From NCBI RefSeq assembly GCF_021869535.1, contig NW_026262745.1:70742001-70806000 (forward strand): a DNA stretch of 64,000 bases. The letters are read 5' to 3'. The notes under the pieces were generated by a model that searched no databases, was not told the DNA's origin, and worked only from the letters and a program-made list of their open reading frames with translations. The position numbers and the translations under genes were made by a program. Each line of letters starts with the position of its first letter. Position 1 is the first letter of the stretch. The stretch comes from Mytilus californianus (Eukaryota). Positions 2 to 28,100 of the stretch are shown here, piece by piece.

Positions 2-1734
2 CACATCGTATATAAGTGAACACAAGTCGGAGTAGTCGTTCCTGATCATGTATTCATACACTTCCTTCGTATTTGCCTGCTGTTTTTGGCATTTAAGCAG
101 TATGTAAATTATTTCTCGGAGAAGATAGTAGGGTTTGTCACCTCCATTATCCTTGCTTTCAACGCCATATCGTTTTAGAAGATATAAACAGGTAACTTTA
201 AAGTCATATGTCTTAACATATGAGGATAATGATAACGCTCGTTTTATCCACTCAGCAGCTGTGACGAGTTCATCTAAGTCGTATAAACATGATGCCATTC
301 TTTTGGCAATGTTGTATTCGCTTGGACCTGATAAAGCTATTCCGTGTTGCAAATAATCAAGAGCATAGTGAAGAAACTCTTTATTCTTAACCACATAGGC
401 GCCATATTTGTTGGTGGATGGGAACTTGGCAATCTTCTGACATATTCTTGCCAATATTTCCATATCAATGGCAGATCCTTTTGATTCGAAGCATCGTTGT
501 GTGCTGCTTGAAAGTATTGCCAAGACAATTCTCTGTTTGTCGTTAAATGCAAATCGCCTAAACTTTCGGCAACTTGCATACGCGTACTATAAGCGAACCA
601 GTTCATGGTAAAACATTCTGTTGATTTAGTAAGTATTGCTTCAGCCATTTCAAGTCGCTGTCGTTTTACATGCGAATCTTTCTCTTTCGAAAGATGGAAT
701 AAAGCACGTCCATATTTATTCATTACAAATGAATCGGGTATTATTTTCTGCATGTCATATGCCTTTCTTAATGGTATCATTGGGTCTCTGATATATTTGA
801 CAAATGACTCATCTTTAATGAACTCAAAATCTGTAGGATTATTTTCAAGTGTCTTGTGTCGTTTTATTAATATATGGCCTATTTGTGCAAGTGATCTTGA
901 AATGTAAGTTCCTTTTTTATCAATGTCATCTGTCATGTTTGCAACATTTAAAAACATTTCAATCGCCTTACAGGTAGCATCCAAGACATCTTTTATTCTA
1001 TGTTCAGTTCGTTGCCTTTGTAGTGAATCGACATGACGATTCCATGCCTCCCCAATGTAATACGACCATACTATTTTGTATGGATATTTGCTGCAGATGA
1101 TTTGGGCCCTTTCAAATTGTTGAAGGGCTGTGATTTTGCGAAGAAAGTATTCGTTTGTTCTACTGCATTGGATAGATTGTTCTAAATTACTGATAGTTTG
1201 TTTGTTGTGGAAAACACATTTTTGAAGCACTAATCTTCTTTCTTTTTCGCTTCTTTGGTGTTCTGCCTGCAGCAGCTTGTGTGCATCAGTTAATTTGCTG
1301 CTTGCAATGTTTTCAATATTAGCTGACATATCGTGCACCAATGCATACCCTTGTTCCAAAAGACAAACAGCTTTATTGACCATGTCTTTTTCTTGGGTGC
1401 TATTAATGATTTTTTCCATGCGTTGTTTGCATCTTGCTGCGTCCGATAGTCTATGCAATCCCTTATAAATCTGTTCTAGATCGGACAATGCATTTAAATT
1501 GTTTTTATTTTCCCTTAGAATATGTTCAAGATTTTCTTTTGCATAACATCGCAATCTTGGTAGTTTTGTTTTCAAAATAGCAATCATATTATTAAGAACA
1601 TTATGTACACACTTATGCTCAACTTGCAGTCGTATTTTAAGTCCTTCTATTTTATCATAAATCATTTGGATGTCTAAAACATACATCAGATTAAGATTCA
1701 GTCCAAATAATCCTGGTATGATGGTACTATCCAT
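2..1734 (-). CDS. TTC22: TTC22-like tetratricopeptide-repeat protein; frameshift at ~495; 3' end runs off the window
   Basis: ORF 337-1734 has IPGLFGLNL, NLNALSDLEQIYKGL and KAVCLLEQGYALVHDM, which match from memory the TTC22 motifs PGHFHLEMQL, NLNAWANLAHVYGRL and ARCLAEQGYAHGFDV. From ~496 an adjacent frame stays open to the window edge (RCFESKGSAIDMEILARICQKIAK...YNIAKRMASCLYDLDELVTAAEWIKRALSL...) and continues the TPR-like helices. Confidence 0.7.
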
Positions 1735-10498: not shown

Positions 10499-11810
10499 TT
10501 TTTAGCTCCCCTGGCCATCTGGGCCAAGTTAGCTTTTCTCATCACTTGGCGTCCGTCGTCCGTCGTCGTCCGTTAACTTTTACACAAATTTTCTCCTATG
10601 AAACTACTGAACCAAATTTAACCAAACTTGGCCACAATCATCATTAGGGTATCTAGTTTTAAAAATATGTCCGACGACCCCGCCTACCAACAAACATGGC
10701 CGCTATGGCTAAAAATGGAACATAGGGGTAAAATGCAGATTCTGGTTATATCGCTGAAATTAAAGCATTTAAAGCAAATATGAGACATAATAAAAATGTT
10801 CATCAGGTTAAGATCTATCTGCCCTGAAATTTTCAGACAAATCAGACAACTCGTAGTTGGGTTGCTGCTCCTGAATTGATAATTTTTTGGACATTTTGCA
10901 GTGTTTGGTTATTATCTTGAATATTATTTTAGATAGAGATAAACTGTAAACAGCAATAATGTTCAGCAAAGTTAGATCTACAAATAAGTTAACATGATTA
11001 AAATAGTCAATTGACCTCTTAAGGAGTTATTGCCCTTTATAGTCAATTTTTAACAATTTTTGGTAATTTTTGTAATCCTTTACAAAAATCTTTTCCTCTG
11101 AAACTACTGAGACAAATTTAACCAAATTTGACTACAATCATCATTAGGGTGTCTAGTTTAAAAAATGTGTTCGATGACCCCGCCTTCCAACCAACATGGC
11201 CGACATGGCTGAAAATAGAACATAGGGGTAAAATGCAGGTTTTTGTTTATTATTTTTTAAACCGTTATAAATAGAGAAAATCTGAAAGTAGCAAAAAGTT
11301 CAGAATAATGAGCTCTACCAAATGTTAATATACGTAAAAACTGTAAGACAAATTTTTATAGGAGTTATTGCCCATAAATGACAAATTTTACCATTTTATT
11401 TTCCTTTTTGCCTATTATCATGAAAACTATGATATTTAGAGAGTAACATTTTTTTTTCCGTTATGCCTTATATGATTTAAATTATAATAGATAAATAAAC
11501 ACTTTAAATCACAAAAATGATCAGCGAGGCAAGATCTATTAAAAAGTCTGCCGATATAGTAAGTCTTCTGTCACTCTTCATAGGAGTGATTGCCCTTTAA
11601 TGAGGATTTGTTTTACCCTCTTTTGTGTTTTGAGCAAAAACTAAAGAAGACAAAGAGAAACTAAACAGACTTAAAGATCAGTAATACAAGATCAACAAAA
11701 TAGAGATTTTTGTCATGAAGTCTATTCAATCTACAATGTTGGAGATTGTCCTTTGTTTGATATGCACATAGACCAAGTTGAGCGACACAGGCTCGTTAGA
11801 GCCTCTAATT
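10499..11810 (+). mobile_element. Helentron-associated (HINE/Helitron-N-like) non-autonomous element with internal ~500-bp duplication
   Basis: Head tttttagctcccctgg, (cgtc)n microsatellite at ~10550, duplicated block at 10590 and 11092, and 3' hairpin caggctcgttagagcctctaattt. Confidence 0.7.
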
Positions 11811-14100: not shown

Positions 14101-14383
14101 TAGTGTATTTCAGTTTTCTTTTTAATAAAGAGACTCACTGACCATAGGGTACTTCTCACGCTGAAAACACAAAACAGTTTTGTGGTTCATATTCACACCC
14201 TTTCTTGGTTATCTCCCATGTATGATCATGTAGACAGAAATTACAAATGTAAACAACTTGGGCGTGTTTTATTGGTCTCTTCTGTACATCTCCAGAATAT
14301 CTTCTGGTGAAGCGTCCAAAAAAATGAGTCTGGGCATCTTCTGGAGATATCCTGGAGAAGAACCAATAAAATACATAATCAAG

Positions 14384-17285
14384 ATGGCGTCAAATGTAGC
14401 CGAATTTTTAATGTTGGATGACTTAACCGACGTTTCTGACGATTTATCAGTTACATCATCTCATTCTAACGACATGACTGTAATTGTGTTCTCTGTTTTG
14501 GCATCATTGTAAGTATAAAAACAAAGTTAATCCAGGAAACTATGCAAAAAGTTACGACAAAACAGACGATTTTTCGTTCCCAATTGTTAATAATCCATTT
14601 TTGGACGGTAAGGGAACGACCATTTAACTTCTAGGGGTGGGGGTTATTGTTTTTTTTTCTAAAAAAATATGTTAATCCCCAATTTGACGAAAAAAAAATT
14701 TCTGGTCAAGCGGATGACAAAAAAATATTCTGAATTCAAATTCCCCCATACATTATAGTATTAAATTTTGAAAAAAATAATCTGATTGATCGCGTTGATA
14801 AATTTATATGTTCCTTTTGCCTCTTCTATAGGTCACAACTTCTTCGCCGTGCCCGTGTTTGTAGTCGCGTTTATTTATATTTTTTTAAGTATAACTGGTA
14901 AAATATTCCTTAAGTCTTAGATCGTGTAACCACAAATTGATTAAACCTTCGACCAAAATCTTACATTTAACAAAGTTTTGATGAGGAAAGGAGAAGGTTC
15001 ACGAAGGGCCAAGTTTTTTAAATCGGGCCAAAAAATTACAAATTTCACATAGGCTTGTGATGATAAGTACTATTAAGACAAACATATATATTTTTGGCAT
15101 CTTCCTTTAAAATTTATGAAGCTATGACCTCTTAAATAAACATTATTTGTATTTTAAGGTCAATTTTGGTCATTTTTTTCAATAATTTTAATTGTTTTTG
15201 GCATAATTAACATTGGCCGCCATCCGGCCACGATCCAAAAAGTTTTTAAATTGATGAATTCTATATCAAAATTGGAATCTTTTGGTTACAATACATTTTT
15301 CAAGCTTTTAGGTCTGAAAATTGCACAAAATCGTCATACGTTTTTGTACATCGTACCAATCTTTTAAGCTAAGCCAATTGCAACAGATTTTTATAGTTGG
15401 TTCTCATCTTGTTCTTTGACACCATTGTTTAAGCTAAGGAGAAGGATTGAGCGCTCCTAAATGTTTCGAACCATGCCCACATACTTTATATGCCTGTCCA
15501 AGTCAGGGGTGTTATGTTGTTGGTTCGTGTCTGTCATATTTATTTTTCATAAACAGTTTTAATTGTAATTTTAGCCGTCAGTTTTCTCTTATGAATTGTT
15601 TTTTTTTTTTTTGTCTTCATTTTTTAATGTCAGGGCCTTTTATAACCAACTTTACGGTATGGGTTTCCTATTGTTGAAGACCGTACTATGACCTATATTT
15701 GCTTATATCAAATTATTTGAACACTGGTGCATAGTTATCTGTCTCATAGGCAATCACGCAATTAACAAAGAAAATTGGTTTGGAAAATTCGCTATGTTCA
15801 TTATGTTTTTTTTTTTCGTTATGCTTTCTTAGCTAAATTTCTTTTTGTCAATGTTTCTCTGATGTATGATCGAACATACACCTTGTCTGTCTATATCAAA
15901 TACGTTTAAAGTAACCAAACTATATTGTTTTTGTATATATATAAAAGATATACCCGCAGACTTAATCTGATGTCAAGTAAAATTAAGAACAACTGGTTTT
16001 AGGGAATGAGGTGACGGTGGGGGAGTAGAGAGGAGGTGTTGTGCGAATTATCTTCACAAATTTCTTCAGTTTCTTCGCATGGTTATTCACATTTCATTTA
16101 TTTCTAGCCTTTTTGTGTTTCATATACTATATGATATTCATTCTGATCCTATCTTGGACAGTGTCCATTCTTCTTGTGCTGTATCTGTACCCATGAACCT
16201 GCGTTTTATTTTTTTCAAAGAGAACATATGAGTCATACAAATAACTACAAGGTTCTTCGTCTAATTTCAGAAACAGATCTCATCATGTACGGATACAAGG
16301 TTATATAGACACGGTTGTGAACAATTATATAGCCACAGATTTTAGAAGAATGTTTCGTCTCACCCGTCCTTGCTTTGAATCACTGCTTGAAGTTTTATCT
16401 ACTAGGCCTGAGATGGAAGTACGTCCAGACATGTTCGGGGGCCGCGAACGAGTGGGTCTTGAAAAAACCGTTCTAATTGCACTTAGATACTTTGCTCACC
16501 AGGGAAACATTAGATCCATATCAGAACTGTTTGATGTTGCGGACTCAACAGTGGTTATATGCAGAAATAGAGTAGTTGCAGCTTTGATGGCGCTAAAAGA
16601 AACCTATATTAAATGGCCATTAGACCATAGAAAGCAAAGACATATATCAAATAAATTTCAAGAGAAAAGGGGATTTCCTGGTGTTATTGGTGCGATCGAT
16701 GCTACGCACATTCAAATACAACCACCGAACGAACACCCACAAGCATATGTGAATAGAAAATCCTATCACAGCATCATTCTTCAAGCTGTTTGCCTACCAG
16801 ATACCTCATTTTCAAACTGTTTTATTGGATGGCCTGGAAGTGTGCATGATTCTCGAGTTTTAAAGAACTCAGAGTTATGGGCGGAAGGTGAAAATGTTTG
16901 TGGAGAAAATCATATAGTTGGGGATGGTGCTTATCCTCTTAACCAATGGTTGCTAACGCCTTATCGAGACAATGGCAATCTTAACGCTGAGAAAAAACGT
17001 TATAATTACATTCATTCATCCACAAGAACTGTAATTGAACGTAGTTTTGGAATTTTGAAAGGACGTTTTCGCAGATTGCATTTTATTGAAACCAAGGAAA
17101 TGGAAACATCCTGTGATATAGGTGTTTCATGCTGTGTCCTTCACAACTTTTGTATCCAACACGGGGACATTGGCGAAGAATTCATAGAGGAAGATTATGG
17201 GAACTGTCATGCAGCTGCAGTCCAGGCCGACAATGACAATACAGGTGCAACTAAGAGAGACGGAATAGCCAGAAACTTACGTTAG
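14384..17285 (+). CDS. HARBI1: Harbinger (HARBI1-family, DDE_Tnp_4) transposase, 2 exons: 14384-14508 and 16271-17285, ~379 aa
   Basis: Catalytic motifs GAIDATH, VGDGAYP and VIERSFG are intact. Exon 1 (MASNVAEFLMLDDLTD...LAS) ends TT|GTAAGT and exon 2 starts ttcag|A AAC AGA, so phase 2 matches and gives ...NRSHHVRIQGYIDTVVNNYIATDFRRMFRL. The symbol marks the family, not orthology to the domesticated host gene. Confidence 0.92.
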
Positions 17286-17778
17286 TGATATGAGAACTTA
17301 ATCTTCATCATAAAACATTTATAAACCTGTTCTGTTCTCTATGTTAAGTATTGAAAACATCAATGTAATCCTATTTTATAAGGAATCATTTCATTGTTCA
17401 TATTAAAATCTTTAAAATTATAGTGCAGTTTGTTCTCAAATTTTGTAAACTTATTTGGTCGTCTCGTGGACATTAATCTAATGTCTCTATCTATGTGAAA
17501 GAGAAGCCAAGTTAAGTTGTAGTTACTTAGTACACAAGCTAACCAACGTAGGCAATGGGGATGCATGAAATGTAATTGAGGGTGTCAGTCTAATTATTGG
17601 TGAATCAAATGTATGTGATTTTACAGTTTACATCATGAGACAAGAATTCGAATAATATTTATTTCATAATTCTCCAATAAACATAATAACAACAACTTAC
17701 TGTTGTGAAACTAATTAGATGATTAAAATTAACAATCGCAATTGTAAATATCATCCAAAATAATAAATAACACACTGT

Positions 17779-18290
17779 TGTAAAATAAATCAAATTAACA
17801 ATTGTAAATTTCAGGTAAAAAAAACACCATTTTGTTGTAAAATAAACCAAATTAACAATTGTAAATGTCAGGTAAAACCCCGGGTAAAACATCATACTGT
17901 TGTACTTTTGTAAAAAAAACAAATTAACAATTGTAAATGTCAGGTAAAAAACATCATACTGTTGTAAAATAAACCAAATTAACAATTGTAAATGTCAGGC
18001 CGGTAAAAAACACCATACTGTTGTACTGTTGTAAAATAAACCAAATTAACAATTGTAAATGTCAGGCCGGTAAAAAACATCATACTGTTGTACTGTTGTA
18101 AAATAAACCAAATTAACAATTGTAAATGTTAGGCCGGTAAAAAAATCATACTGTTTTACTGTTGTAAAATAAACCAAATTAACAATTGTAAATGTCAGGC
18201 AAAACATCATACTGTTGTACTGTTGTTAAATAAACCAAATTAACAATTGTAAATGTCAGGCCGGTAAAAACATCGTACTGTTGTAAAAGA
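17779..18290. repeat. ~55-67-bp tandem array (~8 copies) inside the Harbinger
   Basis: aaaataaaccaaattaacaattgtaaatgtcaggccggtaaaaaacatcatactgttgtactgttgt is repeated between the transposase and F-box stop codons. Confidence 0.9.
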
Positions 18291-18501
18291 AATTAAGTTT
18301 TGAAGTTCCATTTAGTATTCAACACATCACATACACGAAGTCAATGTCTATGATTTATTTAGACCTGATAATGCAAAAGTAAACAATCTTTTTAACATTT
18401 TGAATAAAAGAAACCTTTAGAAATTCTATGCACAGCTACTAACTCAAACAACATAATATTAAACACTCACACTTGTGTTTTGTCTATAGACACTTACATA
18501 T

Positions 18502-19202
18502 TCAAAATAACCAATAAGCACGCAATTGTATCTTTCCCTCATAATATGTGTCTATGAAATTGCATGCATTCTGGTAATGTGAGGCTAGTTCAAACGACAA
18601 ATGGGCTCCCATTAATGTGGGACAAAATGTTAAAGCTGTTAAAAATTCGTCATAGGTACACATGATACCACATGCATCTAAATATTCAAGACTTAAATTT
18701 CTCAAAGTATCTAGAATAGAACTCATCATGACCTGTGTAAATGAAAGATAAAGGTAGGTCAGCTTAGACAGTGGTTTTATATTTTCGAGTTGTTTATCAT
18801 TTATTTTTGTTGATGACAGATTAAGCACTTCTAAACTTAGTAAGTATTTTAGGAAGGAAATATCTGACAATGGACACTCGGTAAAGTCTAAAACAGTTAG
18901 GTTACTAGCATTTACAAGGCCATACATAATATGGTTAAATCTCTCTACACCAACTGTATACACTTGACCTCCAAGTTCTAATACTTTCAACTTTTGTGGG
19001 AATGTAGTAACAAGCAACAAGACATGTTCGTCAATATGACAACTGTCCTCAAATGCTACATTGCTATACAGTGATGGGTGTTGTCTGATAATCGTCCAAA
19101 ATCTAACACAAACTTTTGACACATTTCTCAATAATTCACAAACAGGTATAAGCTGCATTATTTTGACAAAAATCTCATCATGTAAATCCATTAAGTTTAA
19201 TC
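18502..19202 (-). CDS. F-box / leucine-rich-repeat protein exon carried inside the Harbinger
   Basis: F-box LMDLHDEIFVKIMQLIPVCELLRNVSKVCVRFW is followed by LRRs LKVLEL, LTVLDFTEC, LEVLNLSST, LTYLYLSFT and LEYLDACG. There is a strong phase-1 acceptor tattttctatttttacag|GA at 19203/19202. The ORF-track extension 19203-19362 is probably intron. Confidence 0.85.
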
Positions 19203-19590
19203 CTGTAAAAATAGAAAATAAAATAAACGTTTTAAGATTTTCTAAATCAACATTTACATATAAAAACAAATCTGATGGCAGTAGAATTTTAGTTTTCTCA
19301 TATACCCGGTACATGATAGAATATAAACATAAGGAGATGTGGTATGATTGCCAATAATACAACTATCAACCAAAGTAAAAATGAAGTGGATATAAGCAAT
19401 TATAGATAACCATACGGTCTTCAACAATGAGAAAATCCCATACCGTATAGTAAGCTACTAGTATAAAAAGCTCTGACACGGAAAATATTAAAAAAAATGA
19501 TAAGAGAAATCGAACGGCATTATTTATAAAGTACATTCATTGTAAATGTGCACACTTTTCTTCCATCTATATGACAACTGTCATCTCTAT

Positions 19591-22500
19591 TTATTTTTTC
19601 ATCTCATTAATTAGTTCCCTAAACATATTCATTTTCTCACTGTGCATTCTAGCTTTCTCAGCTTTTTCTTCTTCTCTTTCCTTTTTTTGTTCCTCCATGT
19701 ATTGTTTCAAAAAATCTACAACGTCAGGAGAAGGACCACTTCTACGCTTCTTTTCATTTTTAGGGGGCTGAACAGGTTCCGTTTCTTTGTCATTATCGTT
19801 GTCGACTTCATCAACTTTGTCATTGTCATTGACAACTTCATCTACCTTTCTTTTATGACACGTATTTAAGATTTTCGTACCTGATGTGGTGCTTGGTTCT
19901 ATTGTAGGATTTCCACCGAGAATTTCCTCCAGTTCTTCCTGGAAAGCACACGACTTCTTATCAGCACCAGATCGGTTGTTGTGGTCTCTTGTTCTTTTCA
20001 GGGCTGTAATTAATGTTTTCCATTTCCCCATCACCTGTTCCCAGGTAAACTTGTATCCATTAGATGCTAGTTCTTCTGCTATGCATAACCACATTTTCTT
20101 CTTTGTGTTTTTCCCTTTTTGTGTTGCATCATCTCTTTTTTTTATTTCAGCTAGTAGAATTTTGGTTGCTGGTACGTTCCAAAAAATTGGCTGGGTTTCC
20201 TCAGAAGACTTACTAGTAGATGGCATTGAGTCTGTAGTTGAGTCTTCTGTTGGAGCTGTCCGGCTTTCGACTCCTGAAGAAAAAAATAAAAATATAAAAT
20301 CAGTTGAAAAGGGCTTAATTAATTAAATCGATCATCTTTGTTAGCCAAGGGTCATGGATCGTACAGAACTGAGAGTATTCACAGTGTTAAAAGCTAGTTC
20401 GAAGTCAAAACCCACTTTTAAAAAGTCATGTATCTTGGCGACTGTTTTTTTCTCTCAAAATATGTGAACATTTGTATAGAAAGCACATAGAACTACGAAA
20501 ACCATTATAAATAGCATTAGGTATGAACTAGACAACAATAACAAAAAAAATTAGGTTTAATATTTTATATATAAGCAGAAAATACAAATAATATTTCGTT
20601 TTTATCGCATTCAGTTTGGTTCAACTTCGTCAAAATAAGCTAAAGTTCGAAAATATATTCTAATCAATTTCTGACAGCCAAAATAAGGACAATATGTTAC
20701 AACATGGCGTTATGGCAAGGCGTATAACTATTTATTTGATTTTCTCATAATATATATCAGAGATCTTATATGATAAATAAGATATCTCACTAAATATATA
20801 AGATATCTTATATCATTAAATTTTTGTAATATATCTTATATATTATATGAGATATCTTATATATTACATAAGATATCTTATGTACAATAAATAGTTTATA
20901 AGATATATTCCATACTTTATATGATATCTTCTAAAGTTTATAAATATCTTGTAAATTATATGAGATATAAACTATATAAGATATCTTATAAACTTTATAA
21001 GATATTTCATATCGTATAAAACATATCTTATATACTATATAATATATACTATATAAAATATCTTAAATACTATATAATATATCATATATACTATATAATA
21101 TATCTTATATACTTTATAATATATCTTATATATTAAATGTATAAGATATAAGATATACAATATAGAATAATACTATATTTCATATACTATATAAGATATC
21201 TTATATAATATATAAGATAAGATATATCACATAGAATATAAGATATATCATATAGTCTATAAGATATCTTATATACTTAAAAAGATATATAGTCTTAATT
21301 TATAAGATATCTTATAAATATCATTTATTTAATATATGTTATATATAATAATATCTATATAAGATATCTGATTAAATTTGGAAGATACCTTATAAAATAT
21401 ATAAAATATCTAAAAAAGTATATAAGATATCTTATAATAAGCTGATTATAGATGATATCTTATATAGAATATAAGATATCTTTAAAAGTTTATGAGGTAT
21501 CTTAAATAGTTTATAAGATATCTTATATAGTTCATACGATATCTTATATAGTTTATAAGATATCTCATATAGTTTATAAGATATCTCGTATAACTTATGA
21601 GATATCGTATAAAGAAAATATATAAGATATACTATAAATTATATGAGACAGCGGTGTAGGTAGGCCCAAATGATGTGTACTCAATGAAAGGGAAGGAAGT
21701 CTTACGGCGAGTGGTCTCGGGCCGCTCAAGACACACCGAGCTCTGGGGTAATGGTGCAAAATCCTGCATTCTCGCGATTTCCTTGGACTTAAACAAGCCT
21801 TACAGGAATCCTATTTCATCAGTAATAAGTCAACTTTTAAAACTGGAATATATGATAAATAAATTTAAAAAAAATATATAAGTTAGAGAAAAACAAACTT
21901 CTAATGTGTGGTGAATTGATAAAGATTGGATATTAAGTACAATTAAAATATAAAATCAAGTGCAACCACCATATATTTTAATTGTTACCTATTCAGTATC
22001 AGCCGACTATACATTAGAATATCCAAATTTTTAAGCCAAAACCGTCTGTGCAACTTAAAGGGTATTTTTAATGGGAATAGATAGAATAAATAGAATCACA
22101 TTTCTCTATATTTTATTTTATAAGTGAACAAGCAGTCTTTCTTTCAGCTTTTAATGCTCAAATTTAATTCTAAAAATCAAGGACAATTTCTGTTCCTTTC
22201 TTCTACTGATGATGTTGAAAACCGTGACTGCTGAAATTTATTTTCCACGGTATATTTTCCATGGTCTCTTTAGCACGTCATATCTTATTTCGTCAATTAT
22301 CTTGAAATCTTCAGAAAAAATGTCAGGGTAAGGAGGCATAGTAGACGTTACAATTGTGTTCTGACATCCCGAAAATTCAGCTAGATTAAGTGTTTGCATC
22401 ATCTACACAATCATGATGCAGGTTCCGTCAAAGAAAAGAGTAGACCAGTTTTCGGATCGAACTGAATATAGCTACAAAGTGACTATTAACATATGTGTGT

Positions 22501-25108
22501 ATAATACTTTTCAATGTATTCTATTAATTCATGCAGTTTTATTCTTACTAGATTTACCATATTTTATTTTTGTAAAATTTTCGATGTGTACGCAGCTGCC
22601 TTTTTTGTGTACTGATGGCTACGCGCCTGTGAGATATCTTATAAATTTATATAATATATCCAATAAACTATATGAGATATCTTATAACAATATAAGATAT
22701 CGTATAACTATATATTAAGATATCGTATAAACAATATAAGATATCTTATAAACTATATATGATATCTAATAGAATATATAAGATACCTTATAAACTATGT
22801 AAGGTATCTTATTCCAAATATATATAAGATATATCTTATAAACTTTATGAGATATCTTATAACATATATAAGGTATCTAATAAAGTATATGATATATCTT
22901 ATATTATATACTATATTAGATATTGTATATACGATATAAGATATCGTATATATACTATATACTATATATGATATCTTATATACTATATGATATCTTATAT
23001 CTTATATACTATATAAAATATCATATATACTATATACTATATAAGATATATTATATACTTTATAAGATATCTCCTAAAGTTTATAAGATATCTTATTAAT
23101 ATTTTTTATTTAAGATATATTATGTACTTTATTAGATATCTCATATAAGTAGTTAAAATGATATATAAGACATTACGATATCATATAAACTATATAAGAT
23201 ATCTTATAAAGTTTATGAGATTTCTTATAACGTTTATGAGATATCTTATAAAGTTTATGAGATATCTTATAAAGTTTATAAGATATCTTATAAAGTTTAT
23301 GAGATATCTTGAAGTTAGAATAAATAATAAAACGCCTTGCTATATGGAGTGTTTATTTTTTTCAAATCTATTTACAACTATAATTTTATGGAAATCAGAC
23401 ATTGGTACAAATGATTTCAGGACTTAATTTCGGTATGAAATAAAAAATTGAATCTCTTTTTAGCTCAAAGGGAGTGATTATCAGACCATGTTATCAGACA
23501 TATATCCTGTATAAATTCATTGAAATCAGACATTGGTAAAAATGAATTTACAAAACAATTCATACTCTGGCATTTGTTAGTCTAGTATGCTTTTATTTAT
23601 AATTTTAGTTCATTTATTTGTATCGCAGTTAAAGACTACGATCTGTAATAGTATACATGATTATTTAGGGGTCAGCTGGAGACCGCAGCCGGGTGTAGGA
23701 TTTTATCGCTGTGTTGAAGACTCGTAGATGGCCTTGGCCTGATTTGTGCTCTTTGGTCGGGTTGTTGACTCCTTGACACATCCCCCGTGTCCACTCTCAA
23801 TTTTATTTATAAATGTGGATTTGGTTATGAAATAAATAAAAAATACATGTATTCCAACTAAGGGGTGACCATTCGATAATGGGGTGGGTGTGATTTTAAT
23901 CTGATTGCCTTCATTTTAACATGTTGATATCAAAGCTTATAATTATTTGTTTCTGTGGTTGTGCCACGCGAAAATATTTTGACATTTGTATACTTCTTTG
24001 TCCCACTATTTTGAGTATTAGGATTTTCGTTTGCATCCTGTCTTATGTAAGGTCAGATGCGGATTCAGAGGGGGACTCATGGGTCCCCCCCCCCTTTTGT
24101 TGGAAAAATTTGGTTGATTATATAGGGAATCACTGAAGCATGACTAGAGCGGGGCCCCCTCTTAGACAGTCATTGTCCCCCTTTTTGAAACTAGTGAGCC
24201 GCCACTGAAGGTTATTTATTTTCAGCTCCTAATACCATTCGACAAAACACATTCTGGGAAATTTCTTTTGACCGATTTTAGTCTAGGAGTGAGATTTAGG
24301 GAAGGGGACTGAATTGGAAGTTGGGAGGGGATAGGAAAATTGGAATCAGGAACCCCATGTCCACCCCTCTTGAGGCAATACACTATTTTTTGTATGAATT
24401 TTGACATGTTTCTGAAGGGGAAACTTTCTAGCTTTCACGCTTGTCAAAAAATGACAAACAAATCTTTAAGGGTAGTCACAAAATAATAAGTTGAATACTA
24501 GTTGTGGGGAAGACAAATATAATTATGGTCATAAAATGTCAATAATCAAATTTAAGGGTTATTATCCCATCTGTAGGTATGTGTATTACGAAATTTTTAA
24601 ATCATACTAATACCAAAACTGTAAAAATACGGAATACTCTGAAAAGAACAAACGTCACATTTTAAAAACTGTTTATACCCAAAGGAAACGTCGTTCACAG
24701 CCAAAATATGTGTTGTTTTATATTGCATTTAAAAAAAATGGGATTTTGCGGCAATCAAGTCAAGAATTTTACAAAAAATGCTAAACAACATTTAAATTAA
24801 ATAAAAACGTGCTAAGTCACCGGAGTCGAGTGCACCGTGGAAATATTTTTTTTTCTATTTAAATATCCGTCGGAAAAGTTAAAAAATAGACAATAAACGC
24901 GTGGTTATATTTTTTTATTTTTTTTTATACCGCTTTAACTGGTGTCTCGTAATTATAACACTATTACAAGCAAATATTTACCTTCATCAAGCTTATCATC
25001 CCTGCAGGGATGTCCAACAAAGGCTGTCATGCCATAAAAGCGCTTCTCGCAAAGCTCACACTGTATAATATCTGCATTCATTATTTCTCTAATACTCAAC
25101 GACGCCAT
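19591..25108 (-). CDS. Harbinger Myb/SANT (trihelix) DNA-binding partner with N-terminal C2HC-like finger; exons 25108-24982 and 20273-19591
   Basis: Exon 2 has FWNVPATKILL...KKKMWLCIAEEL...FTWEQVMGKWKTL...CAFQEELEEILG and a C-terminal coiled coil. Exon 1 (MASLSIREIMNADIIQCELCEKRFYGMTAFVGHPCRDDKLDE) ends G|GTAAAT, which matches the phase-1 acceptor ttcttcag|GA GTC at 20273. Confidence 0.8.
20713..23342. mobile_element. Inverted pair of AT-rich ATAAGATATCTT arrays (foldback-like), nested in the Myb-gene intron
   Basis: Outer ends TGGCAAGGCG (20713) and CGCCTTGCTA (23342) are inverted and each is flanked by TA. The arrays span ~20745-21650 and ~22630-23310. The inner ends are also inverted-similar. 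Confidence 0.65.
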
Positions 25109-28100
25109 GTTTTTTTATGTGCTCTGCTGTCTAAACCACCTATGTTAAAAGAAGAGGAAGAAGAGGGCCGGAAGATCTTCCGAGTTCAAAAAAACAGAAA
25201 TGGACCTCTTCTGGCTCTCTCCCGATGAACAAAAAAACACGCCCCTTGTTTATAAGATTTTGTATTTAGTGTTTGATTTACTGATCAAACGGATTTTAAG
25301 CTGCATTTATTTCAATTGATAAGTGTTTATCTTATGACATAGGTGCCATCACTAACACCCAAACTGTCAAGAGTTACTGGGGTATACATGGTATAGAAGT
25401 TTAGTCACTTTGGTCTTAGTTCGGACTCCTTGATAACTCGGCCCATACCAAAGTCGGCCTGTAACAAAATCGGCCTTTAACAAACTCAAGAAATGATCAA
25501 TAAAATCTTTGAAAGTACTGAAAGGTTCATCTTGCAGTTAACATTTTTATGTCAATAATTTTGTGCAACAGCTTGCGTGTTGATCAAATTCTAAATATAC
25601 ATTGACTGTCAATAAGGTCACCAACTATTCAATACGCCCTTTACAATGACAAAGATTATTGATAAACAATCTAATTGTCAAATATTTATTATTTAATAAC
25701 ACAAGTATAGCTTTTAAATCAGTAATTTTTTTTTTATTTCATACATGACATGCATGACATATATATATAGCTACAGATTTATATGATTCATTCAATCATT
25801 GTAATTATTAACATGATTAATACATGTAATATATCTGAACTAACACAAAATTAAATCTGCCCTCAATTACATTGATTATTGATTATAGATAAAATTGTCA
25901 TCTTTTTATTGTTTCGTGAACACAAATCAAGGTTATAAGTCTACAAAACTTTTATTTTATTACTGTTAGGGGTCAGTTAAGGATTTTTGCAGCTTACATG
26001 TTGGTTAGTAATAGAAAATATTTTATGTACAGATAAATGCCTTTTATAAGTTATTTATTAGATTTGAATTACTTTTTAATTTCTGAAATATTCTATTGTG
26101 TAAATGTGTCAGTTTAACAATAAATCATTACTAAGATAGAAATTTATAACATAGGTAAAAAAAAGTAAGAGACTTTTTGGTGACCTTTTAACAAGGCAGA
26201 ATCGTGAACTGTGACATGGTTTTCTTTTTTTGGTGTATAAATGGGAGGTGCAAAATCAATAGGGATTGCATGGAAAACTTCTGCACTATATTTACATTGA
26301 TGACATTCACTTGTATGGTTCTGATAGTTTTTTTTCTTATAATGATTAATGTTCCAATGTACACATTTGTTCATACATCTGAGTCACAGGAACACAACAA
26401 ACAGCAAAATTATGATGACCATATTTTGACCTCTAGATATCTCTTGTGAACTTTTGGTTATTTGTGTCCTTGGGTTGCTGACTAACACAAAAATGGACAA
26501 ACAGGGACAGATCCTTACAGACATTTCAGTTTTCTAGATGTATTTATTTACACTCTTTGTGATTTTTTAAAACTTGCTGGATTAAACCTTATTATAATTC
26601 CAAAAACTTGTATGTTTTTTTTTGTTTTAGGCATATATGTTGGTGGGAATTATAAGAATTAAAAGGTGTTTTTGTTGTTTATCAATATGTAGAATAGTTA
26701 CTGTGAATTTATTTATTATCATGGGTACCAATTTTCACAGATTGAAGAAAAGTTGTATTTTTGTAGCAAGGTATCTGATTTGTGGTATTGCCAAAGCTAC
26801 CATGGTTACCATACTAATCTATGTATACGATAGAAAATTCTTAAATCGATAAACACTTAAATTGGTACAAATGTAGTTAAGGTAGCTGGCTATGGGGGTC
26901 TGAATGTTTGACTATAGATTTTTCTAAAACTTCTTTAGAAGACTATTGGGTCATTGTACTCTCAAATTTCAATAAAAATTGGGGGTCACAGACCTTGTTT
27001 TTTGGTTGAAATGCATTGAAATCAACAAAATCACAGTTATTTTATATGGGTTATTAATTATATAGGGGAAACTTGATTTTTCCATATTGAGGAAACATTA
27101 CACAATAGAATTGCTTAAATCTCAATGAGGGAATTGCTTTTCATAAATACTTCCAAAATTCTAAATAGAAATAGAGGGTCACCTGGTCACAGACCTTATT
27201 TTCTGGAAAAATTTAAAAAAAAACGCAAATTGTCTGATCAAATTCAATATAATTATCTCCCCTTGCTTTTTCTGAAATTTTTTTCATACACTTAACGAAA
27301 TTAAATTTTTTGATAGATTAATTCCTTAATTTCAAGTAAAACATGTTGTTGTTGTCTATTGAATGATACTTAGTAAAATATTTTTAAACCAGAAAAATAA
27401 TTTGGCAACACAAGGGTTGCTCAGAAAAAAGATACTCCATCTACCTAAATTTGCCTTTACAAGCAAAATCCATGAATAAATGGATGAATGATACAATGGC
27501 AACACAAAATGATGAATCCATAACTTATCTTAGTCATGTTAGTCATGTAGTTGTTATTACAAACTTACTACATGTATTATAGAAGTCATTCTGACTATTA
27601 TCATGATTATTTTGCATTTCAGTGCTTCATTTCATTCTATACAGGAAGGTTTGGACGAGGGGTCCTTCATTTTCTTTATTCTTAAATTTTTTAAGCCATG
27701 TTTTCTCTATTCTTTTTTAATTTTGCTCATTTTTCTCTTTTCTTTATACATTTTGCCAATGTTTCTCTATTCTTTATCATGTTTATATTTAAGCATCCCA
27801 TTATTCTTTACTTTAAATATTTTCTGCCCATTTTACTCTAATATTCTTTATTTTTGGTACCCATTTTTTTTGCAATTTTTTTCTGTATACCCAATCCTCA
27901 TACACTGATAATATCCTTAAAAATGATAATTGTCCAATGACATGTATAATTTTAAAAAAAAAACTTTTGAAAAGTGACATTTCTTGCACATTTGAAAAAC
28001 ATATTTCCAGAAGATGCTGGGTATACTTTATTTCATATACTCAGAAAAAAAACTAGTTACATTGTATTATATGTTGTATATACTTCTTATAAAATCAGAT

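Follow-up and report, generated by a model that had tools for sequence, protein, structure and literature searches.

A stretch of 64,000 nt from the California mussel Mytilus californianus (RefSeq assembly GCF_021869535.1, contig NW_026262745.1, positions 70,742,001 to 70,806,000 of the forward strand; hereafter the window, with position 1 as its first letter) was analyzed for the coding structure of one minus-strand gene, in which a zinc-finger-like first exon is followed by exons for a Myb/SANT-like domain and for an F-box/leucine-rich repeat (LRR) protein. The minus-strand stretch carrying this gene (18502-25108) is one half of a PIF/Harbinger transposon of 10,985 bp (14260-25244), which is intact and has CTT duplications on both sides. 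Our preferred reading, to which we assign a probability of roughly 60%, is that one promoter serves two proteins: the finger joined to the full Myb protein, and a finger-Myb-F-box/LRR fusion formed when a phase-1 donor within the Myb exon, for which 19881 is the likeliest candidate here, is spliced to an acceptor at 19202. A sister Harbinger family already has annotated gene models with one first exon and two such products, a feature that had drawn no comment. For the window element, the two-product design is partly supported, and only by comparison with its relatives.

Under the proposed scheme, the first product (finger plus full Myb) would be the canonical partner that binds the element ends and works with the transposase. 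The second would arise when the internal phase-1 donor, most likely 19881, is joined to the acceptor at 19202 and the C-terminal tail of the Myb protein is removed. The gene would thereby contain an optional intron starting inside the Myb exon, which gives the usual Myb partner if retained and a Myb-F-box/LRR receptor if removed. This fusion would be a substrate receptor of SKP1-cullin-F-box (SCF) ubiquitin ligases with the element's own DNA-binding domain, and we favor a role in which this SCF receptor, tethered to DNA, would act on a protein located at the element ends.

Exon structure and splice phases

The first coding exon (24982-25108, minus strand) sits just inside the right terminal inverted repeat (TIR) of the element. 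It runs from an ATG at 25108-25106 to a final base G at 24982 (donor AAG|GTAAAT), and its length of 127 nt leaves the junction in phase 1. The encoded motif is C-x2-C-x12-H-x-C; a classical C2H2 finger (C-x2-4-C-x12-H-x3-5-H) was rejected for this exon because the second His is missing. The only Pfam match was zf-met, below the cut-off with an E value of 0.048. The motif is best described as a putative CCHC-type zinc knuckle, and its spacing is common to the window and sister families.

The Myb/SANT-like exon, of the Harbinger ORF1 type, is located at 19591-20273 (minus strand). Its phase-1 acceptor, ttcttcag|GA at 20273, is conserved in three other copies (L003, L004, and L005), and the exon is in frame with a 211-aa open reading frame (ORF) that stops at 19593-19591. 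Comparison with Pfam identified Myb_DNA-bind_4 (PF13837) with an E value of 1.1e-10 and 42.2 bits, relative to a cut-off of 27. The F-box/LRR exon (18502-19202, minus strand) is entered through the phase-1 acceptor tttttacag|GA at 19202, reads G-LNLMDLHDE... from there, and stops at 18504-18502. An in-frame ATG is found four codons in (19191-19189), and an AATAAA follows downstream at 18359-18354. Separately, a perfect GTAAGT at 18488-18493, four bases past the F-box stop, might point to an intron located in the 3' untranslated region.

The finger-exon donor and both acceptors are all phase 1, and the frames are open across the joints, in the window, in a Mytilus coruscus copy (L005), and in the sister family; in a third subfamily this applies to the acceptors. 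A first-pass annotation of the window had proposed exon ends at 24982, 20273, and 19202 that were compatible in phase 1, and all of these coordinates were right on the minus-strand reading. Of the three domains that it named, Myb was confirmed by the Pfam match, the F-box was below threshold in Pfam and upheld by its predicted fold (see below), and the zinc finger was likewise below threshold and CCHC-type rather than C2H2.

The distance from the Myb stop to the F-box acceptor is 388 bp, in agreement with an earlier estimate of ~390 bp, half of it repeat. The repeat, at 19322-19524, is dispersed, with at least eight further copies within the window; it is common to the family, which fits an insertion-tolerant position. 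An AATAAA that had been described as overlapping the Myb stop is present at 19595-19590. The candidate alternative intron of 678 nt (19203-19880, minus strand) would hold the C-terminal coding part of Myb, the Myb stop with its AATAAA, and the dispersed repeat, and it is proposed from an annotated intron at the sister-family locus L008.

In the spacer that separates the Myb stop from the F-box acceptor, L002 (95-185) and L004 (~800-900) bear a miniature inverted-repeat transposable element (MITE) with inverted ends of ~90 nt (GGGGTAAAGCTGATGACC...). The copy carrying it is 75-81% identical and was found in JGI samples 3300006078 and 3300006079, a second insertion tolerated in this spacer. What appeared to be an extra mini-exon in L002 and L004 was rejected as the two ends of this MITE with its long inverted repeats.

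Intron 1 (20274-24981, minus strand) is 4.7 kb in length, and roughly half of it consists of palindromic TATAAGATATCTTATA-type repeats, which build long imperfect inverted repeats at 20740-21640 and 22640-23330. The intron is collinear in L005. Because this M. coruscus copy carries the same repeat filling at ~83% identity, the filling travels with the element.

Annotated isoforms in a sister family

An exhaustive HMMER search with the F-box/LRR part returned mostly generic LRR proteins and a handful of full-length relatives. One of these, P0023, has an N-terminal extension of 136 residues, and its 90% cluster contains 365-aa RefSeq models from M. galloprovincialis (XP_076103514.1) and M. edulis (XP_071166754.1 and XP_071127511.1) as well as an independent M. 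edulis model (CAG2216130.1). All of these models read from a CCHC first exon through a Myb_DNA-bind_4 domain ending ...DHNSKSG and then into an F-box/LRR part beginning FMDLTEEL..., and the same Myb-F-box junction is found in a partial M. trossulus model.

For LOC143072474, RefSeq lists two isoforms. X1 (XP_076103514.1, 365 aa) comprises the finger, Myb cut at a phase-1 donor (...SKSG), and F-box/LRR, and X2 (XP_076103515.1, 259 aa) combines that first exon with the complete Myb. The same two isoforms are also annotated in M. edulis (XP_071127511.1 and XP_071127512.1). The NCBI pipeline is not known to build extra isoforms on anything but transcript alignments.

At the corresponding locus (L008), the first exon (11027-11122) lies just inside a TIR-like GGGCGTATTTG and has the same motif spacing and phase as the window exon, as does that of P0166. 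The X1 donor, CAG|GTAATG, is within the Myb exon, and the frame continues to the Myb stop when this donor is unused; the X1 joint, ...SKSG|FMDL, links L008 13069 to 13678. The F-box acceptor is located 234 nt past the Myb stop, and a 376-aa Harbinger transposase lies convergent downstream. The sister family is like the window element in its order of TIR, CCHC-type first exon, Myb, F-box/LRR, and convergent DDE_Tnp_4 transposase, in having all junctions in phase 1, and in the finger spacing C-x2-C-x12-H-x-C; unlike the window element, it has its internal donor 29 codons further upstream, where it trims the Myb_DNA-bind_4 match. Identity between the two families is 37% for the F-box part, 45% for Myb, and 54% for the transposase, and the sister ORFs are intact in many copies. 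Public records call the sister proteins uncharacterized and make no link to a transposon. From this comparison we infer that the window element follows the sister scheme.

The M. edulis model P0023 was itself rejected as a model for the finger exon, as its first exon (L008 10001-10097) lies outside the TIR, ~780 nt beyond it. At 97 nt, this outer exon equals the sister element's own finger exon in length and phase. It may reflect transcription into the transposon from a host promoter, or it may be an artifact of gene prediction.

Up to three products had been predicted for the window in the first-pass annotation. Homology to the sister isoforms supports finger-Myb and the fusion, and no model was found for a finger-F-box-LRR protein. 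Such a protein would be the main product if the Myb exon were skipped and donor 24982 joined directly to 19202, which we judge to be quite unlikely. Both sites are phase 1 with Gly as the junction codon, and the sister family is equally compatible with skipping, but the ~262-aa form expected there was absent from a length-range search and from a cluster listing able to show one, and every annotated fusion retains the Myb domain. The mechanism first suggested, alternative terminal exons together with the AATAAA at the Myb stop, gains less support from the sister family, whose design looks more like an intron that begins within the Myb exon and is either used or retained.

Candidate internal donor in the Myb exon

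The candidate internal donor, CAG|GTACGA (19876-19884, minus strand), has its final exon base at 19881, in phase 1 after ...EPSTTS. This site had been put forward earlier as TCAG|GTACGA at 19881/19880, and both its phase and the in-frame joint, which from 19881 to 19202 would read ...PSTTS-G-LNLMDLHDE, proved correct. Using a rough donor matrix that we built ourselves, 19881 was the best-scoring GT of the Myb exon. Phase matching alone is weak evidence, because 10 of the 29 GT sites in this exon are phase 1.

Conservation of the donor across copies, which had been named as a check, was found: G|GTAC is kept in five copies differing by up to ~25% (the window, L003, L004, L005, and L014), and adjacent third codon positions vary around it in L003, L004, and L014. 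An M. edulis gene model (P0015) splices from this same site, onto an unrelated exon. The site homologous to the annotated sister donor, CTG|GTGCTG (19963-19971, minus strand; final exon base 19968, phase 1), is weak in the window, and L004 and L015 have no GT at this position. In all three subfamilies, the GT with the highest score in the Myb exon is phase 1 and falls just past the Myb domain, at residue 102 in the sister family (its annotated donor), 130 in the window (19881), and 134 in L015. These sequences suggest that the donor shifted between subfamilies while its phase stayed, and 19881 is the best candidate here. A fusion made at 19881 would leave the Myb domain complete, whereas sister X1 loses the last 12 positions of the Myb_DNA-bind_4 profile; the acidic, coiled-coil C-terminal tail of the Myb protein is dropped in X1 and would be dropped in the window fusion as well.

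The F-box/LRR exon in other subfamilies

In the third subfamily (P0016 and P0030), the F-box part is 53% identical and adjoins a convergent transposase (L009). In L015, which also belongs to this subfamily, the Myb exon acceptor is phase 1 and the F-box exon begins at gacag|GA, again phase 1, 133 nt past the Myb stop, with a frame that opens VNLLVLPDE. In a further relative with 43% identity (L001), the distance and phase of the acceptor are the same, and phase 1 of the F-box acceptor is kept in four subfamilies. The F-box exon looks like a coding exon that has to be entered by splicing, since a Met at the F-box start is present in just three of the nine relatives covering that position, L015 has no ATG, and the L001 acceptor shares the phase.

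The same comparisons bear on whether the F-box/LRR exon could be a separate third gene. Transcription of such a gene would begin within the 388-bp spacer, perhaps at a start supplied by the repeat insertion, or the protein would be translated from the ATG at 19191 on a read-through RNA; the 19202 acceptor would then be idle or belong only to a non-coding leader. We consider both the separate gene and this role for the acceptor to be unlikely. An ATG four codons into the exon is shared by the window, P0001, and the sister family, but the other six of the nine relatives lack the Met, and subfamily 3 lacks any ATG. The spacer that would have to house a start measures merely 133-234 nt in other subfamilies. 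An AATAAA overlapping the Myb stop would suit separate expression, yet it is not conserved in L003 or L008, and for that reason it was also rejected as a conserved switch between products. Stand-alone forms of 228 aa come from ORF callers and the databases contain no window-family fusion, whereas annotated fusions of the sister family come from three species and both acceptor and phase are kept in four subfamilies.

Several points nevertheless weigh against a spliced fusion in the window element. In the window copy, the ATG of the F-box exon and the AATAAA on the Myb stop make separate expression possible, and the F-box-like match of the window protein scores 16.3 bits, below the cut-off of 24.3, with LH in place of the usual LP. 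The RefSeq isoforms of the sister family are models, the donor scores derive from a crude table, and, given that the sister's donor is weak at the homologous 19968, the donor must have moved. Database searches found no annotated window-family protein with a finger-Myb or Myb-F-box junction. No spliced form of the window or sister family was present among the fetched Logan assembly contigs, which are collinear with the genome, and the sequencing runs listed as containing the stretch include none on record as RNA.

Predicted structure of the F-box/LRR protein

The LRR portion of the window protein was recognized by Pfam as LRR_4 with an E value of 2.6e-6. Aligned relatives exceed the F-box cut-off, with 40 bits for P0017, 37 bits for P0189, and 22.7 bits for P0166 on PF00646 (cut-off 20.5). 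An AlphaFold2 model of the window F-box/LRR protein had a predicted local distance difference test score (pLDDT) of 95.2 and a predicted template modeling score (pTM) of 0.90, and the predicted fold presents a three-helix F-box followed by an LRR arc. The best Foldseek matches were FBXL2-SKP1 (6o60_C, E 5.8e-7) and SKP2 chains in SCF complexes (template modeling score up to 0.64), and a family profile search reached FBXL2 and FBXL17. The product of this exon has a SKP2/FBXL2-like predicted fold.

This confident predicted fold argues against the exon being a passenger, that is, a captured piece of a host gene with no role for the element and with phases that match by chance. DNA transposons commonly capture host fragments, 10 of the 29 GT sites are phase 1 anyway, and the M. 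coruscus copy has a stop in its F-box; even so, we regard a passenger as very improbable. The F-box exon occupies the same place between Myb and the convergent transposase in three subfamilies, even with F-box parts that are only 37-53% identical, and intact ORFs are present both in the window copy and in many copies of the sister family. Ratios of nonsynonymous to synonymous substitution (dN/dS) between the window and L005, which rest on small counts and are blurred by decay after insertion, were 0.44 for the F-box part, similar to the transposase at 0.34; the finger exon gave 0.21, and all three showed an excess of synonymous changes (p ~0.02 for each).

Other copies and sequence searches

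L005 is collinear with the window element from TIR to TIR and has unrelated flanks with a CAG duplication of its own, and for these reasons it is taken to be an independent insertion. In this copy, half of the transposase has been lost, Myb is broken, and the F-box contains one stop; the finger donor, both acceptors, and G|GTACGA are kept. Its first exon is 90% identical to that of the window, including the donor. L005 is a deletion derivative at 11605-11613, where the segment matching window positions 16830-18498 is gone, with breakpoints a few bases past the F-box stop and in the middle of the transposase. Fragments of the family were also recovered in L006, L007, and L014.

The Logan/JGI contigs L001-L004 and L010-L013 were considered as transcripts and rejected, as every contig that could be set against a genome locus follows that locus collinearly. 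P0007 and P0014 were rejected as fusion gene models because they are stitched together from a transposon fragment and distant exons. A word search with the F-box returned three relatives only, and both of the metagenome scans came back empty.

Comparison with known systems

Harbinger elements are textbook two-protein transposons. Canonical PIF/Harbinger elements (Harbinger3_DR and PIF/Pong, with ORF1 and transposase) have been described with two proteins (PMC2836001, PMC9179366). The window element is like them in its DDE_Tnp_4 transposase, Myb/SANT-like second protein, short TIRs, and 3-bp duplication, and unlike them in that its Myb gene bears a third coding module, F-box/LRR. A literature search found no paper on a Harbinger F-box module or on a transposon-borne F-box splice variant.

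In the P element, a repressor isoform arises by intron retention. As in our proposal for the window, removal or retention of an intron there decides which of two proteins, with a DNA-binding N-terminus in common, a single transposon gene yields; the P element alternative is a truncated transposase, whereas the window alternative would gain a ubiquitin-ligase adaptor module. Among viruses, polerovirus P0 and nanovirus Clink are encoded F-box proteins that send host proteins to SCF. They resemble the window case as F-box adaptors of a selfish element's own, but they have no sequence relation to it and no DNA-binding fusion partner. We suggest, tentatively and with considerable doubt, that an optionally spliced SCF receptor built on the end-binding Myb directs ubiquitination at the element ends, a strategy so far viral and not known for a transposon. 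If this were true, ubiquitination could be aimed at host silencing or chromatin factors, as a counter-defense, or at the element's own transposase, as self-limitation.

Host F-box genes with captured transposon domains have been reported, namely Caenorhabditis F-box A2::Mos1 HTH (helix-turn-helix) and zebrafish F-box::CxC7 (PMC12062965). These fusions share with the window the combination of an F-box and a transposon-derived DNA-binding or zinc domain in one polypeptide; they differ in being host genes, whereas the window fusion is encoded within an apparently autonomous mobile element and would be optional by splicing. That report does not mention Harbinger, Myb, or molluscs, and the direction seen here is the reverse of the one that it describes. 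A ubiquitin-ligase adaptor kept over at least three deeply diverged subfamilies, when read as a splice variant, points to a transposon that taps host protein degradation at its own DNA; if true, this would add a mechanism to transposon-host conflict and provide a natural DNA-tethered degrader. For genome annotation, RefSeq lists such elements, in many copies, as ordinary "uncharacterized" mussel genes.

Transposon anatomy and neighboring features

The element carrying the gene is a PIF/Harbinger transposon of a Mytilus mussel, both intact and mobile. It combines a DDE_Tnp_4 transposase, a Myb/SANT-like gene, and TIRs with a 3-bp target-site duplication, and copies are present at unrelated sites. 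The left target-site duplication (CTT, 14257-14259) is followed by the left TIR, GGGCGTGTTTTATTGGTC, at 14260-14277 on the plus strand, and homology to L005 ceases at 14257. The right TIR (25244-25227, minus strand) is followed by the second CTT at 25245-25247, and homology to L005 ceases at 25246. The two TIRs are 18 nt in length with two mismatches, and both start with GGGCGTGTTTT, at 14260 and at 25244, each flanked by CTT.

The transposase is encoded on the plus strand by two exons, convergent with the Myb/F-box gene. Exon 1 (14384-14508) begins with an ATG at 14384 and ends at the donor ATT|GTAAGT in phase 2, and it is conserved in L005 by tblastn. Exon 2 (16271-17285) is entered through the acceptor tttcag|A and carries the Pfam domain DDE_Tnp_4 (PF13359; E 2.8e-36, bit score 125, cut-off 24.8). 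The two-exon transposase, Myb, and F-box ORFs are all open in the window copy. Tandem Repeats Finder identified a 67-nt minisatellite (17774-18285) of ~8 units with 92% matches in the interval separating the 3' ends of the transposase and of the F-box exon, which converge here. Outside the element, the longest ORF of the window (465 aa; 337-1734, minus strand) had no Pfam match at an E value of 0.001.

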